A DNA stretch of 64,000 bases, from assembly GCF_001194135.2 (NCBI RefSeq), contig NC_068986.1, forward strand, positions 9,446,308-9,510,307. The letters are read 5' to 3'. Each line of letters starts with the position of its first letter. The first letter of the stretch is position 1. A program made the position numbers and the translations under genes. The notes beneath the pieces are model-generated. The model made no database searches. It was not told the DNA's origin and saw only the letters and a list, made by a program, of their open reading frames with translations. This document shows, piece by piece, positions 9,194 through 34,804 of the stretch. This stretch comes from Octopus bimaculoides. Lineage: Eukaryota.

Positions 9194-9208
9194 GAATGAC
9201 TGCAGACG
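9194..9208 (+). CDS. 15-nt microexon (G-MTAD-G); may carry the start ATG at 9196
   Basis: CTAAC branch-like motif 9156-9160, pyrimidine tract, catgcag|GAATGACTGCAGACG|gtgagt. Phase 1/1, in frame with exon 15174. Confidence 0.65.
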
Positions 9209-10771
9209 GTGAGTAAATGACTCCTGCATGACGCCTTTACCATTATTGCTTTTTTTACCATTTCTATTGCCCCTGATATTTTTATTCTTGCTATTTGTTG
9301 TTGTGTGTTTTGTTTAACCCTGCTCCTGTCATCTGTTTCAATTCCATTGTTGCTTATTATTAAAAGTCATTGTTAACACAATGCTTAACTGTTTCATTAT
9401 GTATTAAAGGAATTATCCACAGGATCAGGGTTGACATATAAAGTCGCTGTTCAAGTCTGATATTGTAAAATATCTAAATATTCTGGTTGTCAAATATTCT
9501 ATTGTTGCATGTTAATGTTGTCATTGTAATTCTGTTTTATTTATTCAATTTATTTTATTTTATTTACCATTTTATTGCTTGATTTATTTATATAGCCAGA
9601 ATCACAAACATTGCTCTTCTTTTAACTTCTATTTTTCAATATTTTTTTAAAAATTTTTACATTCAAAATAAGTCTTTAATATATTTTTTTCATGACTTTC
9701 TCACAGTAGTTTTCCTACTTTTTGTGAAGAAGCAGACCTGATTCCATTTCTTGTTTTAATTTCCCACTTTAGACTTTATGGCAAATAGAACAATACACTT
9801 GATACGTCACTACAAAATACATAAGGACTATGTGCCTCATTGCTTGGTTTGTTAGGTTTTTTTTTTAATTAAAATAATCTTGGACAAATTTGTTTTTGAG
9901 ATTTCCCATACTCCATCTTTTTGGAAGTTTTCCTGGTATGTTATTTTAACTATTGGGGTGACAGCACTAAGCAGTGATGTGTTTAAATACAAACAATAGT
10001 AAATTATAATGGTGTACTTCAATTTGACCAGCCGTATACTTCAAGGATGCCTACAGGAATTTCCAATGATATAATTCAGTTTCTTTAAATAAGATAAGTT
10101 AAATAAGTCCGGTTTCTTTTATCAATCAGATTCCTATTAACGATAATGATATTTATGTCGTTTACTATTTACAATTCTTCATAATTATGAACTCTTTGTT
10201 CATTACACTCAAAATCATTGATAAAGTAATTTGATGCAAAATAATTATTGAGTGACTAATTAACTTGTTAATCACTATGCTAGTGTGATGCCTGTTATAT
10301 GAATTAAGCATATTTACCCTAATATGCTATGTAAGATTAAAACCATACCATGTTATTTGAGTAGTTCTATTTAGAATAACATTTAAAAGTCAACCATTGT
10401 TATGTATACTTGGAAATATTTCCATTTTGGAGTACATTAAGTGTTCAGAATGGCTTATCAGTGAGTAGAATAACATTTTTTTAAAACTCCTCAAAACGAA
10501 CCCTAAACCTTACTTTCATAAGGTTTCACTTCATAATCTCCCTTCATTTTTATTAGGGATACCAAAGGATTCTTATATTGACATCACTTGAGTTGTGTTC
10601 AGGTCTTCATTGCTATCAAATATTATTTTAATATTGTTACTTTATTATTATTGAATGATATCTTAATAGTTTTTGTGAAATAGTGTTTAGTCTTTTGTTA
10701 ATAATAATGTCCATTTCAAAAATTGGATTACCAACATTGTACAATGGAATCATAGCTATTTACAGTGTATG

Positions 10772-10872
10772 CACACACACACACACACACACACACACAC
10801 ACACACACACACACACACACACACACACACACACACACACACACACACACACACACACACACACACACACAC
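10772..10872. repeat. (CA)n microsatellite, about 50 uninterrupted units
   Basis: Directly visible; among the longest of many (CA)n, (TA)n, (CT)n and (AAT)n tracts. Confidence 0.97.
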
Positions 10873-12451
10873 GTACGTATATGGTAGTATAAGTCTTTGA
10901 TAGTAGTATATGCTATGTAGCAAACACTCTTCAACTATATTCTGCTACCAGTCTTTGATATAAAATGTAATTCCTTGTCTGACCAAAGAAGAGATTCTTC
11001 CAACTCTACAAGAACCTAGTTTTAAGTTCTGTGCTATTTATTCTGTGTGTGTGTGTGTGTGTGTGTGTGTAGAAAGGTGATTGATTGCGTTTTTGATGTG
11101 ACTTACACATATTGATTCCATAAACTACATGATGTCTCCTGATAACATTAAATGGATGGGAAACAAATGTCAGTAGCTAGCTTGAAACAATCTTATATTT
11201 CCAGCCAAGCGGAGTTCTGACTACAACAAAGTTAAACAATAGAAACTTGCAATCAATTTGCTAAGTAATGCAGTAATTTAAGTGCCAGCATCTGATTCAT
11301 TCAGCAATTCAACTTTGTTACCAAGATGGCCATCACTTTTATCTGGAAAAGAAATTTGTTGCTTTTGATGATGAATGTTCACTTGTTCTTGATTGAATTT
11401 GTGTCTAATTGGCTATTTCAGACATGTGCTCTCTGAATGTAATTCTGAGACAAAATCAGCATGACGTAGTGTGTTATCAGTCTCCCCTTTGAATTACATG
11501 TCTAATCCACCCAGCAGGCTTCTGTACACTTTCCCCTCAACCCAGTTTCATTCACAAGATTTGGGCTGACCTGAGGCTCTAGAAAATGATATTTGCCCAA
11601 GATGCCAAATACTGGGATTGAACTGCTGGCTTTGTAGTTTGTAAGCCATGCTGCATCTACACTTACATGCATACATGATAGGTAGCTGCATTCTTATCAC
11701 ACACACACACGATAGGTAGGTGTAAAAGAAAGAGCATAAAATGGTTAATGTTTTGCTATTCTCAATGTTCGTTATGCATGAATGTTGTCGATGTTCTCAC
11801 TTGGCGCCATTTAATGACATTCTTGTGTTATTCTTCAGATATGTGTGTTTTGTTTTAATTCTTTGTTTTTATTTTTGTCAATGATTCTCTTTGATGTCTT
11901 GGCATGAGTTAGCATTATTATTATTATTATTATTATTTTCAGTTTGACAATCAATGCTGTCATTCAATTTAGTCTTGAAATTATCTGAGAAAAAGCGATT
12001 CCCTAATTAATTGTATCCAAATTGGTTTGGGGGAATAATGTCAAGTTGTCTTTATATCAGACACATTAAAAGTATTCCATTAAAAATTTTCTGAAGATTT
12101 TGTCATATTTAGGAGGAGACAAAGTACTGACCAGATTATAACCATATATATATATATATATATATATATATATATATATATANNNNNNNNNNTATATATA
12201 TATATATATATATATATATATATATATATGGTTATAGCATATTCTATTAAGAATGTAGTAGAATTCAATATAAAGTGCTCGTTCACCTTCAGATTTCCTC
12301 CTGTGTTATCCAGTAGTAGTTGTATTATACGTACTTCCAGGTTTGTGTTTGGGTATCTGTCATGTGTGACTAGGTAATTGCAAAAATTGGAGACATTTTT
12401 TTTTTACTTTTTCAATCACTACAATTGTTTCCATGCAATATAATTCTCCAG

Positions 12452-12457
12452 ATGCAG
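12452..12457 (+). CDS. Possible 6-nt microexon (adds D-A)
   Basis: aattctccag|ATGCAG|gtattt. Phase 1/1 and in frame, but short enough to arise by chance. Confidence 0.25.
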
Positions 12458-32400: not shown

Positions 32401-32761
32401 GTGAGATCTATTTTACAACAGTTTTCTGCATTTAAAGCCAATACACCTGGCATCATTCCAAGCTGTCTTTTTAAGTGAATGCTTAGCTTTTGTTTTGCTA
32501 TCTCCCTTCTGCTGTATACTGTTACATGTATCAAATGTTGTTGTAAGGTTTACTGGTATTGAGCTTAGCTGTTATACAGAGGTTAGTCTGTACTGTTGAT
32601 GTAGATATTTACAGGAGTGCTTCATTTTCTCGGTTTACAAACATCCTGTAGTTAACAATCAGAAACTTGTTGTTTTATATCACACGTTTCAATATTAGAT
32701 ATCTGTGGACAGAAGATTGTCTAACACTCTACTTTCCTGTTGTTGTTATTATTAGAGAGTT

Positions 32762-33300
32762 TAAGGCAGTGAGATGGCAGAATCGTTAGCACGCCGGGCG
32801 AAATGCTTAGTGGTAATTTGTCTGCTGCTACATTCTGAGTTCAAATTCTGCCAAGGTTGATTTTGCCTTTTATCCATTTGGGATTGAGGAAATAAGTACC
32901 AGTTATATCACTGGGGTCGATGTAATCAACTTGCCTCCTCCTTGAAAATGTCAGGCCTTGTGTCTTCAGTAGAAAGGGTTATTATTAGAGTTTGTTGCTC
33001 AATTTGTTAAGGTGGTGAGCTGGCTGATCCATTCGCATGCCAGGCAAAATGCTTAGTGAAATTTCATCCATCTTTATGTTCTGAGTTCAAATGCTGCTGA
33101 GGTCGACTTCAACTTTCATCCTTTTTGGGGTTGATAGAATAAGTACCAGCTAACTAGCAGTTGTTTACATCAACCCCAGGTGCTCAACTAGGGCCTATTT
33201 TATTGACCCTGAAAGGATAAAAGAAAATTTTAATTACAGCAGAATTTGAACTCAGAACTTAAGGTCAGAACATTGATTCTGTGTTTCAGGACATATTTAC
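32762..33300. mobile_element. Cluster of three family M SINEs (+32762-32985, +33008-33150, -33160-33300)
   Basis: Repeated ttctgagttcaaat..aagtaccag blocks; the last copy is inverted. Confidence 0.8.
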
Positions 33301-34058
33301 AGCAACCAAAAGAGTGTCTCAACACCAGTCAGTGCTTATGTCAGGACAAGAACCAACAAACCCCTCTTGCTTCCTTGTCTACTACTCTTTCAACCCAGAC
33401 ATTTTCTTGGGTATGGTGGTCAGTTATGTTCTTAGAACAATCTGGATTCTTCTTCTCTTCTCTTCTCTCAGCTGTTTTTAACAAATCTGCAGAATTGAAG
33501 CATTGAGCTGACTTAACATTGAAACTGACTTTGTAATTAAAATACTGTGTTATTTTGTTTCCTATTGTCTTGTCGGGTAATTTATTGAGCATTTTAAAAA
33601 AGGCTAAGGGAGCAGACCCCTACAAAAAATCTGGAGGGAAGGGACCGTAAAGCAGATATGGTTATACTAAACCAATATCTGGCATCCCCTGAGGCTGTGC
33701 AGATGCCACAAACGTATTGACTTATCATTCTTTTATGGCATTTTCATGAGTGGAGACATGGTAAGTGTACCCAAGGCTAGGCACTTGCTTCTGGACACAG
33801 CCCAGGCACAGCAGAGCAAGTGCTTAACTTACTGGTCTCTCTAATACTACCAACCAAAATAGGAAATGGTCAATCATTATTTTAATGGGGGGGGGGGGTA
33901 AAAGAAAAAAAAATATTTTGTGTAAATTTTCTTTTTTCTTAATTCTTTGCATTATTTCAGCTTCTTCAAAAAATTTCAATTCATGGAATGTATTTTCTAG
34001 AATTTGTGAAAAGATTTAATGTAATGCAGATGTGTTTATTGACTTGTCTCTATTTCAG

Positions 34059-34804
34059 GTACATTCCAGAACATAGAGCATGTGTTTGTCGTCGGTGTTG
34101 CAGGTGGTGTTCCTTACTACACAGACTATTATAAACACGTTCGTCTAGGGGATGTGGTGATATCTCGAGGAGAAGACAGAGATGTCATCTATTATTATTG
34201 TGAAAAAATCATGAAAAATAAAAGTGGAGACTTGCAGTATATTCACAAGACATTTGCTCCTAAAGATAGTAGTTTACAACAAACAGCAAGGAAGATTGTT
34301 GAAACCAGTGCAAGTAATCCCGAATCAAAACCATGGGAACTCTATCTGGAGGAAGGTCAGAAATTATTGCAAGGTCAAGAAGTTCACTTTATGCGTCCAT
34401 CTTCCACTACTGACCGTCTTTATATGAATATCGGAGAAGATAACGTCATTGAAGTTGAACACCCACAACCACCAGAGGAGATTGCTTCCACTTTCGATTC
34501 AGACAAGCCGAGGGTTCATTACGGTGTCCTTGGTTCAGGCCGGCCTGTTGTCAAAAGCGATGCCATTCGGCTTGATTTTGCTGGAAAATATAATATCAAA
34601 GCTTTCGATACTGAATTTGATCAAGTTCTTGAGTCAATAATTGGCAATCGGAAAGACAGTTTCATGTTTATTCGTGGCATATCTGATTATACTGATGGCT
34701 CTAAGAACAAAGAATGGCAACCTTATGCTGCTCTTACTGCTGCTGCTTTCATGAAAACAATTATAAAGGCCTTATCCAATCCTTTAGTAGATGAAGATTT
34801 CTAA
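34059..34804 (+). CDS. Terminal coding exon: core of PNP_UDP_1/MTA-SAH-nucleosidase-like domain, stop TAA 34802-34804
   Basis: ctctatttcag acceptor; ORF 34082..34804; motifs VFVVGVAGGVP, RLGDVVIS, VHYGVLGSG, AFDTE, IRGISDY, KNKEWQPYAALTAAA. Confidence 0.95.

Follow-up and report, generated by a model that had tools for sequence, protein, structure and literature searches.

Among the closest described relatives of the gene considered here are Cap17 and DtcC, PNP-fold ATP nucleosidases that act as effectors in the antiphage systems CBASS and Detocs, respectively, and in which mutation of D472 (Cap17) or D353 (DtcC) abolishes defence. This role, mentioned in a preliminary description of the octopus DNA analysed below, agrees with Rousset et al. 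(2023; bioRxiv 10.1101/2023.01.24.525353). There, the fungal protein NLRN (Hyaloscypha variabilis A0A2J6RX17) is reported as a nucleosidase in vitro (ATP>dATP), and Cap17-like PNP domains are described in arthropods and nematodes, the examples being D. melanogaster Q8MRM6 (CG12065), A. mellifera A0A7M7MVF0 and C. elegans H2L0A5 (H14E04.2). These animal PNP domains are joined to a domain called homologous to Zα, and the authors speculate that (d)ATP is degraded upon recognition of foreign nucleic acid. Here we analyse a gene of this kind in a 64,000-nucleotide stretch of the Octopus bimaculoides genome (contig NC_068986.1, positions 9,446,308 to 9,510,307 of the forward strand; hereafter the window, in whose own numbering all coordinates are given).

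The locus resembles the arthropod and nematode proteins in placing a winged helix before a PNP domain of the Cap17 clade, and differs from them in that the 5' exons are absent from the window copy and in that the Zα label is not supported by our tests of the winged helix. It is thus an additional orthologue of a known family and not an unnoticed gene type. The preliminary description had proposed an uncharacterised metazoan sensor-effector: the first adjective stands, in that no later functional study of CG12065, H14E04.2 or animal ATP nucleosidases was found in the literature searched, while the same architecture and the same speculation were already present in Rousset et al. On balance, we favour the view that this is a protostome-conserved gene of CG12065/H14E04.2-type architecture whose product is an adenine-nucleotide N-glycosidase of the immune clade, gated by N-terminal modules. 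The full protein would comprise an N-terminal domain of around 165 amino acids, whose exons would lie 5' of the window, followed by an acidic HTH_69 winged helix and an N-glycosidase of PNP/MTAN fold.

That the gene is an intron-rich animal gene encoding a winged helix followed by a PNP_UDP_1 fold, as first described, is borne out by the spliced model, a Pfam HTH_69 match and the homologues. Five exons on the + strand, bounded by GT-AG introns of compatible phase and containing not a single N, splice in frame. The first, 15174-15282 (AG acceptor, GTGAGT donor), bears the Pfam HTH_69 match. It supplies a linker together with α1 and α2 of the winged helix (LPKIDNRPKDEILREKMLHILESAYPNILAVEDIC-R), and with them E..YPN, a motif invariant in the family (Tyr30 at 15248-15250); its tblastn alignment with the closest relative, P0268 (76% identity, E=1e-12), begins exactly at the acceptor. 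The second, 19157-19275, identified by its splice sites and the family alignment, contributes helix α3 and the β-wing (ITAADEVMVREQLKELHTRNLVTEMEQGGFMRHVLDEKS) with its aromatic Phe71 and invariant Arg73 (19251-19253), and matches P0268 at 79% identity (E=5e-20). In exon 21274-21417 a linker leads into the PNP fold, which begins here (QPTIAIITAMYYEKLAVD...) and includes the predicted catalytic Glu108 at 21354-21356; the fold continues in exon 27125-27250 (ESNVYTIGFIGEHKVVSTKLPAIGHARSAQISSGNTTTRLL-G; E=1e-20 against P0268). The last exon, 34059-34804, comprises 248 codons and a TAA stop (34802-34804) and gives the strongest match to P0268 (E=1e-120). It contains a GGVP..HVRLGD loop, an insert of some 120 residues (34163-34522), D-T-E in the position of the EME motif of related enzymes (Asp354 at 34607-34609, Glu356 at 34613-34615), the predicted catalytic Asp380 within RGISDY (34685-34687) and the tail KNKEWQPYAALTAAA. 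The peptides quoted in the preliminary description all lie in one + strand frame, at 34388-34747. The first AATAAA past the stop, at 34970-34975 (+), is a candidate polyadenylation signal by pattern match.

When homologues were compared with the window by tblastn, the last exon gave E=2.5e-79 and other exons 5.6e-18, 2.2e-15 and 3e-3, matches that are far above chance level. The spliced model is collinear with P0020, an uninterrupted homologue of 417 amino acids (52% identity, E=2e-157), with few insertions or deletions and none at exon junctions, and its residues 5-416 are 83% identical to residues 169-581 of the 582-residue P0268. Pfam assigns HTH_69 (PF22979) to residues 14-73 of the whole model with 36.8 bits against a cut-off of 27, and PNP_UDP_1 with 24.3 bits, slightly under the cut-off of 25.1. 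The full spliced model is needed for these matches, single exons yielding only a weak HTH_69 match; a phmmer comparison of the model with PDB sequences gave noise only. Introns 3 and 4 each contain an assembly gap (19382-19753 and 26195-26717, respectively) and are each spanned by a junction collinear with the homologues. Since P0020 and P0268 match the sequence across these junctions (...DEKS|EVQLV... and ...YKTEG|ESNVY...) at every residue and without a break, the gaps conceal no exon and leave the frame unaffected. A third gap, at 12183-12192, consists of 10 N in a (TA)n microsatellite that precedes the first supported exon, in non-coding sequence of a putative intron 1.

The nucleosidase domain and its relatives

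The structure of the orthologue P0020 was predicted with AlphaFold2 from a 71-sequence alignment, giving a model with pLDDT 90.3 and pTM 0.85 in which the insert of around 120 residues is also predicted to be structured. A Foldseek search of the PDB with this model returned, as its top 50 matches, exclusively MTAN (MTA/SAH nucleosidase) or futalosine hydrolase structures (E ~1e-11, identity ~15%). The closest solved structures are MTANs (E. coli MtnN; PDB codes 1NC1 and 3DP9, among others), with a Foldseek TM score of about 0.7 on the target, and the window protein has equivalents of MtnN Glu12, Glu174 and Asp197. Glu108 aligns with Glu12, at a position where the phosphorylases DeoD and Udp have a phosphate-binding Arg, a difference that points to hydrolase-type chemistry. 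Asp380 aligns with Asp197, as well as with Cap17 D472 and DtcC D353. Conservation at these sites is complete across the family, in 64/64 members at the Glu108 position and 137/137 at that of Asp380, and all three predicted catalytic positions are intact in the window copy. Nevertheless, the protein differs from the MTANs in its low identity to them, in possessing the insert, the winged helix and the N-terminal domain, and in lying outside the MtnN branch.

For placement of the domain, reference sequences of DtcC, the fungal NLRN and the sponge DDAN were taken from the supplement of Rousset et al., Cap17 from an E. coli CBASS locus, and MtnN, DeoD, Udp and Amn from E. coli K-12. NLRN was the best-matching reference by blastp (E=1e-16, 27% identity), the alignment of 307 amino acids spanning the whole domain including the insert. 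DDAN and Cap17 gave local matches only, around RGISDY, and none of MtnN, Amn, DeoD and Udp showed a significant full-length match to the window domain. The GGVP...HVRLGD loop and KxxEWQPYAAxxAAA tail are common to the window domain and its fungal and bacterial relatives; with NLRN in particular it shares the long insert, a GGxP...RLGD loop, the catalytic Asp in RGI[SC]DY and a KxxxWQxYAAxxAAA tail. The blastp result and this motif alignment uphold the preliminary assignment of the insert and of the RGISDY...KxxEWQPYAAxxAAA tail to the fungal-NLR type. In a tree constructed by neighbour-joining only (291 columns, 200 bootstraps), the animal family is monophyletic with 100% bootstrap support and lies among fungal NLR-type and bacterial homologues. 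A grouping with housekeeping enzymes, named beforehand in the preliminary description as incompatible with its proposal, was not recovered: the clade that unites the animal family with its fungal and bacterial relatives, Cap17, DtcC and DDAN excludes MtnN, Amn, DeoD and Udp, with a bootstrap value of 71.5%. In PADLOC, the CBASS 'PN-superfamily' effector matches best (E=1e-8). Judged from its sequence, the window domain has a PNP fold of hydrolase type and belongs to the Cap17/NLR clade.

Within that clade the domain combinations differ. NLRN carries NACHT/TPR sensor modules C-terminal to its PNP domain, whereas the partners in the octopus protein, an orphan domain and a winged helix, are N-terminal; NLRN furthermore has EME where the window protein has DTE, and the latter is without an NTPase. 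The STAND NTPase and repeats of fungal NLRs were found neither in the window model nor in six scanned HTH_69 members (574-708 aa). Cap17 and DtcC share with the window protein the PNP fold, the catalytic Glu and Asp and the broad clade, but their sequence similarity to it is only local, they lack the long insert, and their sensors are of other types, TPALS/SLOG in Cap17 and a receiver domain in DtcC. Two bacterial sequences branch closest to the animal clade, and both show conflict-system features. One carries a fused EAD2 adaptor domain; the other, P0095, adjoins a phage-type integrase and a STAND-like NTPase, and its gene overlaps the end of an AlaX/tRNA_SAD-domain gene by 4 bp (metagenome contigs L008/L009, 6001-7005); this locus may be an undescribed conflict-system operon.

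Homologues combining HTH_69 and PNP_UDP_1 occur in insects, chelicerates, nematodes, a priapulid, a brachiopod, molluscs and a rotifer. With named members from brachiopod, oyster, octopus, rotifer and priapulid in addition to those from ticks and horseshoe crab, the family is, on the basis of these sequences, protostome-wide, extending beyond the arthropods and nematodes. Homologues from Glossina, Rhagoletis, bee and nematodes have the same architecture as the window protein. Automated labels often read just 'winged helix' or 'uncharacterized', since the PNP domain falls under the Pfam threshold; PNP_UDP_1 goes unreported by Pfam for several full-length orthologues (P0235, P0250, P0267). As for the fly member, CG12065 has been recorded in the SUMO-enriched proteome after immune challenge, and its mRNA as a 'high-occupancy' target of RNA-binding proteins. 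Proteins with multiple HTH domains also appeared among the HMMER matches and were rejected as family members, being generic HTH repeats. A protein of 735 amino acids, P0318, joins Methyltransf_FA (farnesoic-acid O-methyltransferase-like) to HTH_69, a combination that may be genuine or may reflect the merging of gene models.

Several observations weigh against reading the family as gated, immune-clade adenine-nucleotide N-glycosidases. The predicted structure is that of the orthologue P0020 and not of the window protein; PNP_UDP_1 scores just below its Pfam cut-off; support for the wider 'immune' clade is moderate, at 71.5%, and that for the position within it 16%. The E-M-E motif, identical in MtnN, Cap17, DtcC, NLRN and DDAN, is D-T-E in the window. 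Across the family the consensus is D-x-E, and the last Glu, corresponding to MtnN Glu174, gives way to Gly, Asp or Asn in around 24% of members, among them nematodes (DAG) and a tick (DTG). As judged from these alignments, the D-x-E variation suggests that ribose is recognised differently or that some lineages have lost activity; with D-T-E replacing EME, ribose recognition and hence the substrate may differ from those of the EME enzymes. Evolution has been slow, with identities to the window model of ~33-59% across several phyla, and no lineage-specific expansions showed in the homology searches, a combination that would be unusual for an arms-race effector. Experimental precedent is limited in that the assays of Rousset et al. 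covered only the NLR domain of a fungus and a Death-domain protein of a sponge. Lastly, orthology to CG12065 and H14E04.2 is indirect, resting on shared architecture and on the fly, bee and nematode homologues.

Some of these points are what would be expected of a metabolic or regulatory nucleosidase with no immune role, an explanation that we regard as the strongest of the rivals while giving it well below even chances. The enzyme would then be constitutive, acting on another substrate (MTA, SAH, AMP or a modified nucleoside), or would regulate the adenylate pool in the manner of the bacterial AMP nucleosidase, its N-terminal modules serving as allosteric or dimerisation domains. High conservation over protostome phyla with no sign of expansion, the D-x-E motif with its variable third position, and the acidic winged helix described below, which speaks against a nucleic-acid sensor, all suit such an enzyme, as does the fact that the closest solved folds are MTANs. 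The sole NCBIfam match covering the whole PNP domain is likewise MTAN; its score, however, is 36.2 bits against a cut-off of 169. Further evidence against a metabolic enzyme comes from the lack of significant alignment with MtnN, Amn, DeoD and Udp where NLRN gives E=1e-16, from the position of the family in the Cap17/NLR clade of the tree, and from an insert and C-terminal tail of conflict-system type.

The modules preceding the nucleosidase domain

A separate AlphaFold2 model of the P0020 segment preceding the nucleosidase domain shows a three-helix winged helix (pLDDT 78), the prediction indicating that this fold is genuine. It shares with the Zα domains of ADAR1, ZBP1, E3L and PKZ the minimal three-helix winged helix, the β-hairpin wing and a conserved wing aromatic. 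Superposed on ADAR1 Zα bound to Z-RNA (2gxb_B), it gives a TM score of 0.83 (target-normalised) and a root mean square deviation of 1.8 Å over 63 columns. Yet in the Foldseek ranking that same structure comes only 21st, behind generic winged helices with similar scores, the neighbours of the model including SelB, RPC39, MarR/ArsR regulators and ribosomal eS25. A comparison of the family profile of the winged helix with PDB sequences likewise placed eS25 and archaeal regulators first, with PKZ Zα at E=0.11, and Pfam z-alpha had no match at E≤1 in the spliced model.

Zα contacts Z-DNA, in ADAR1 numbering, through Asn173 and Tyr177 of helix α3 and Trp195 of the wing. With the human ADAR1 Zα sequence, confirmed against 1QBJ and 1QGP, hhalign returned a probability of 3% against the family profile, in a register that sets Asn173 opposite Arg and Tyr177 opposite Lys of the window protein; the same register follows from the hydrophobic i/i+4/i+7 pattern and the K-G turn. 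Both columns are variable, with Asn or Tyr in none of 13 members. Of the three contact positions, only that of Trp195 retains its character, with an aromatic (Phe, Trp or Tyr) there and an invariant Arg after it. The Pro-Pro motif of the Zα wing is absent from the window protein. The charge of the domain differs too: all of 12 members are acidic (net charge -3 to -7, isoelectric point 4.3-5.2), the window domain having a net charge of -5 and an isoelectric point of 5.0, as against +5 and 9.8 for the basic ADAR1 Zα. The recognition helix is variable across the family, and the most conserved surface feature of the winged helix is not this helix but the E..YPN motif between α1 and α2.

These results bear on the proposal that a Zα-type sensor is coupled to an ATP nucleosidase, such that foreign nucleic acid, in Z-form or otherwise, switches on (d)ATP degradation. 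It has in its favour the homology reported by Rousset et al., the good superposition on 2gxb_B and the conserved wing aromatic with its following Arg. Set against these are the low Foldseek rank of Zα among generic matches, the order of matches in the profile search, the low hhalign probability, the replacement of both helix α3 contacts in columns that never hold Asn or Tyr, the absence of a Pfam z-alpha match and the uniformly acidic character of the domain, and we consider the proposal improbable. From these sequence comparisons, nucleic-acid sensing in the manner of Zα is unlikely. Moreover, as the domain is without the Asn and Tyr contacts and is acidic in 12/12 members, any role as a nucleic-acid sensor is doubtful. 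The same holds for the suggestion in the preliminary description that the winged helix replaces the sensor of NLR proteins, given its acidity, its variable recognition helix and the missing Zα contacts. More probably it is a module for contacts with protein or ligand, or for oligomerisation.

A better sensor candidate is the domain that precedes it. Lingula, Timema, Trichinella and dipteran-like homologues have around 165 additional residues before the winged helix, and in an exhaustive HMMER search with the winged-helix profile the typical full-length members, which include those of flea, priapulid, Strongyloides and Aphelenchoides, are 575-610 amino acids long with the winged helix at ~170-250. 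The closest relative, P0268, is a 582-residue open reading frame on a transcript-sized Logan contig of 2.2 kb, with some 168 residues preceding the matched part; the long form is therefore expressed in a close relative. The N-terminal domain (residues 1 to ~165 in P0268, P0235, P0234, P0250, P0279, P0283, P0122 and P0230) is conserved in 11/11 aligned full-length members. It contains the motifs HVAGGxHxG and FPRDYVGFIKKxMKLMQ, and its invariant residues include P12, H38, G41, G42, G46, F69, E84, R86, D121, Y122 and K127. No match to it was found in Pfam, PDB sequence profiles or PADLOC, the passages of Rousset et al. consulted make no reference to it, and a word-indexed homology search with the Lingula N-terminal region retrieved two proteins only. 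'Short' forms in the databases start at a Met internal to the long form: the start of P0126, MDDSMVGSRTEL, corresponds to ...PMSMDDSMVGSKTEL in P0235.

No part of P0268 residues 1-168 has a match anywhere in the window by tblastn, and exons for the N-terminal domain are absent from window positions 1-15173 in searches with five distant homologues, P0230, P0231, a hidden Markov model and P0268. Because full-length relatives carry these further residues and none were found in the window, the model of 418 amino acids is probably 5'-truncated, the gene continuing upstream; the window would hold the 3' part, the last ~70% or ~414 of ~580 codons, in five supported exons. By comparison with the full-length relatives, whose additional N-terminal residues are conserved, the winged helix is not the true N-terminus of the protein, contrary to what the preliminary description had supposed. 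Absence of the N-terminal domain does not exclude membership of the family, since its exons most likely lie 5' of the window. The six exons said to give 418 amino acids do so exactly, and five of them stand, with their splice sites and the TAA stop. The sixth, a first-exon candidate of 13 nucleotides at 9196-9208 (+; ATG ACT GCA GAC G|gtgagt), is in phase and has no homologue support, its product MTAD (residues 1-4) aligning to neither P0268 nor P0020; either chance or use as an alternative first exon may account for it.

A linker exon was also sought by scoring every phase-compatible upstream donor, and none of the 78 candidates was convincing. The top candidate against Lingula, a microexon at 1399-1428 (+; xDKFSAPIIV-G), has strong splice sites at both ends, is compatible in phase with exon 15174 and resembles the Lingula linker (AP...G-L-K-D-R); against the closest homologue it scores -14. 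It might join N-terminal-domain exons upstream of the window. Lingula isoform X3 (P0122) stops soon after the equivalent of exon 27125-27250 (...TTRLLGKNESELVS) and so is without most of the nucleosidase domain; another isoform X3 was noted for Priapulus (P0279). In C. elegans, H14E04.2 has a cassette exon that is developmentally regulated and sensitive to nonsense-mediated decay. Alternative splicing may regulate the family.

An inactive remnant, whether a pseudogene at this locus or a pseudo-enzyme scaffold, is suggested by the absence of the 5' third of the gene from the window, by loss in some lineages of the Glu equivalent to MtnN Glu174 and by a PNP domain below the Pfam threshold. It is very unlikely in view of five open exons with canonical splice sites, three intact catalytic positions and 83% identity to an expressed relative; with introns of 2-7 kb, the missing 5' end is most simply a consequence of the window boundary. 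Contamination from a fungus or bacterium, or very recent horizontal transfer, which might be brought to mind because the nearest non-animal relatives are fungal NLR-type and bacterial proteins (~30% identity), is effectively refuted by the intron structure, with spliceosomal GT-AG introns between the five exons that measure 2-7 kb and are rich in animal-type interspersed repeats and microsatellites, and further opposed by the monophyly of the animal clade (100% bootstrap) over many phyla.

Surroundings of the gene

The genome here is AT-rich (22-43% GC) and rich in microsatellites. Gaps at 8111-8531, 12183-12192, 35940-36280 and 48739-48751 are directly flanked by (TA)n or (CA)n microsatellites and look like collapsed or unread simple repeats. 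Short interspersed repeats of ~80-170 nucleotides with 60-95% identity, belonging to several families (D4-D14), occur on both strands in introns and flanks. They include copies at 3129-3310, 5463-5645, 13236-13332, 18423-18598, 39792-39982, 45113-45209, 47886-47968 and 59617-59800, among others, and look like SINEs (short interspersed nuclear elements).

Four open stretches on the + strand resemble parts of transposable elements. That at 41985-42338 (YSPDLAPADFHFFPKMK) looks like a decayed mariner/Tc1 transposase, that at 43833-44183 like the decayed C-terminus of a Helitron/Pif1-type helicase, and those at 29275-29511 and 62089-62442 like remnants of LINE (long interspersed nuclear element) type. 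A Pfam search of these four suspected remnants gave nothing significant.

Proposed function of the family

The favoured reading, an adenine-nucleotide N-glycosidase of the immune clade that is gated by N-terminal modules, carries with it a tentative mechanism, in which we infer the substrate, the regulation and any immune role by analogy. The C-terminal domain would hydrolyse, rather than phosphorolyse, the N-glycosidic bond of an adenine nucleotide, and the analogy to NLRN, DDAN, Cap17 and DtcC makes ATP or dATP the best guess as to its substrate. By the further analogy of MTAN, Glu108 would activate the attacking water and Asp380 protonate the base, while Asp354 and Glu356 would hold the ribose. 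The N-terminal modules may hold the nucleosidase off until a signal arrives, as is thought for Cap17, DtcC and the NLR sensors, with the winged helix more likely engaged in protein or ligand contacts than in nucleic-acid sensing.

A more specific version, which we put forward tentatively and hold to be appreciably less probable than the general one, is that the family represents a protostome, single-chain and cell-autonomous effector that destroys ATP or dATP in the manner of Cap17, its gate being formed not by Zα but by the N-terminal domain with its HVAGGxHxG and FPRDYVGFIKK motifs together with the acidic winged helix. Here, too, the substitution of D-x-E for EME might mean that another nucleotide serves as substrate. 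As the ribose-binding motif differs from that of every characterised ATP nucleosidase, the substrate is to be tested and not assumed.

The octopus locus itself adds one orthologue and no new type of system. What is worth following is, rather than this locus, the orphan N-terminal domain of the family, its winged helix of non-Zα type and the D-x-E motif. Were (d)ATP indeed degraded on a danger signal, the family would be an animal counterpart of the bacterial abortive-infection effectors, and one that is genetically tractable in flies and worms.

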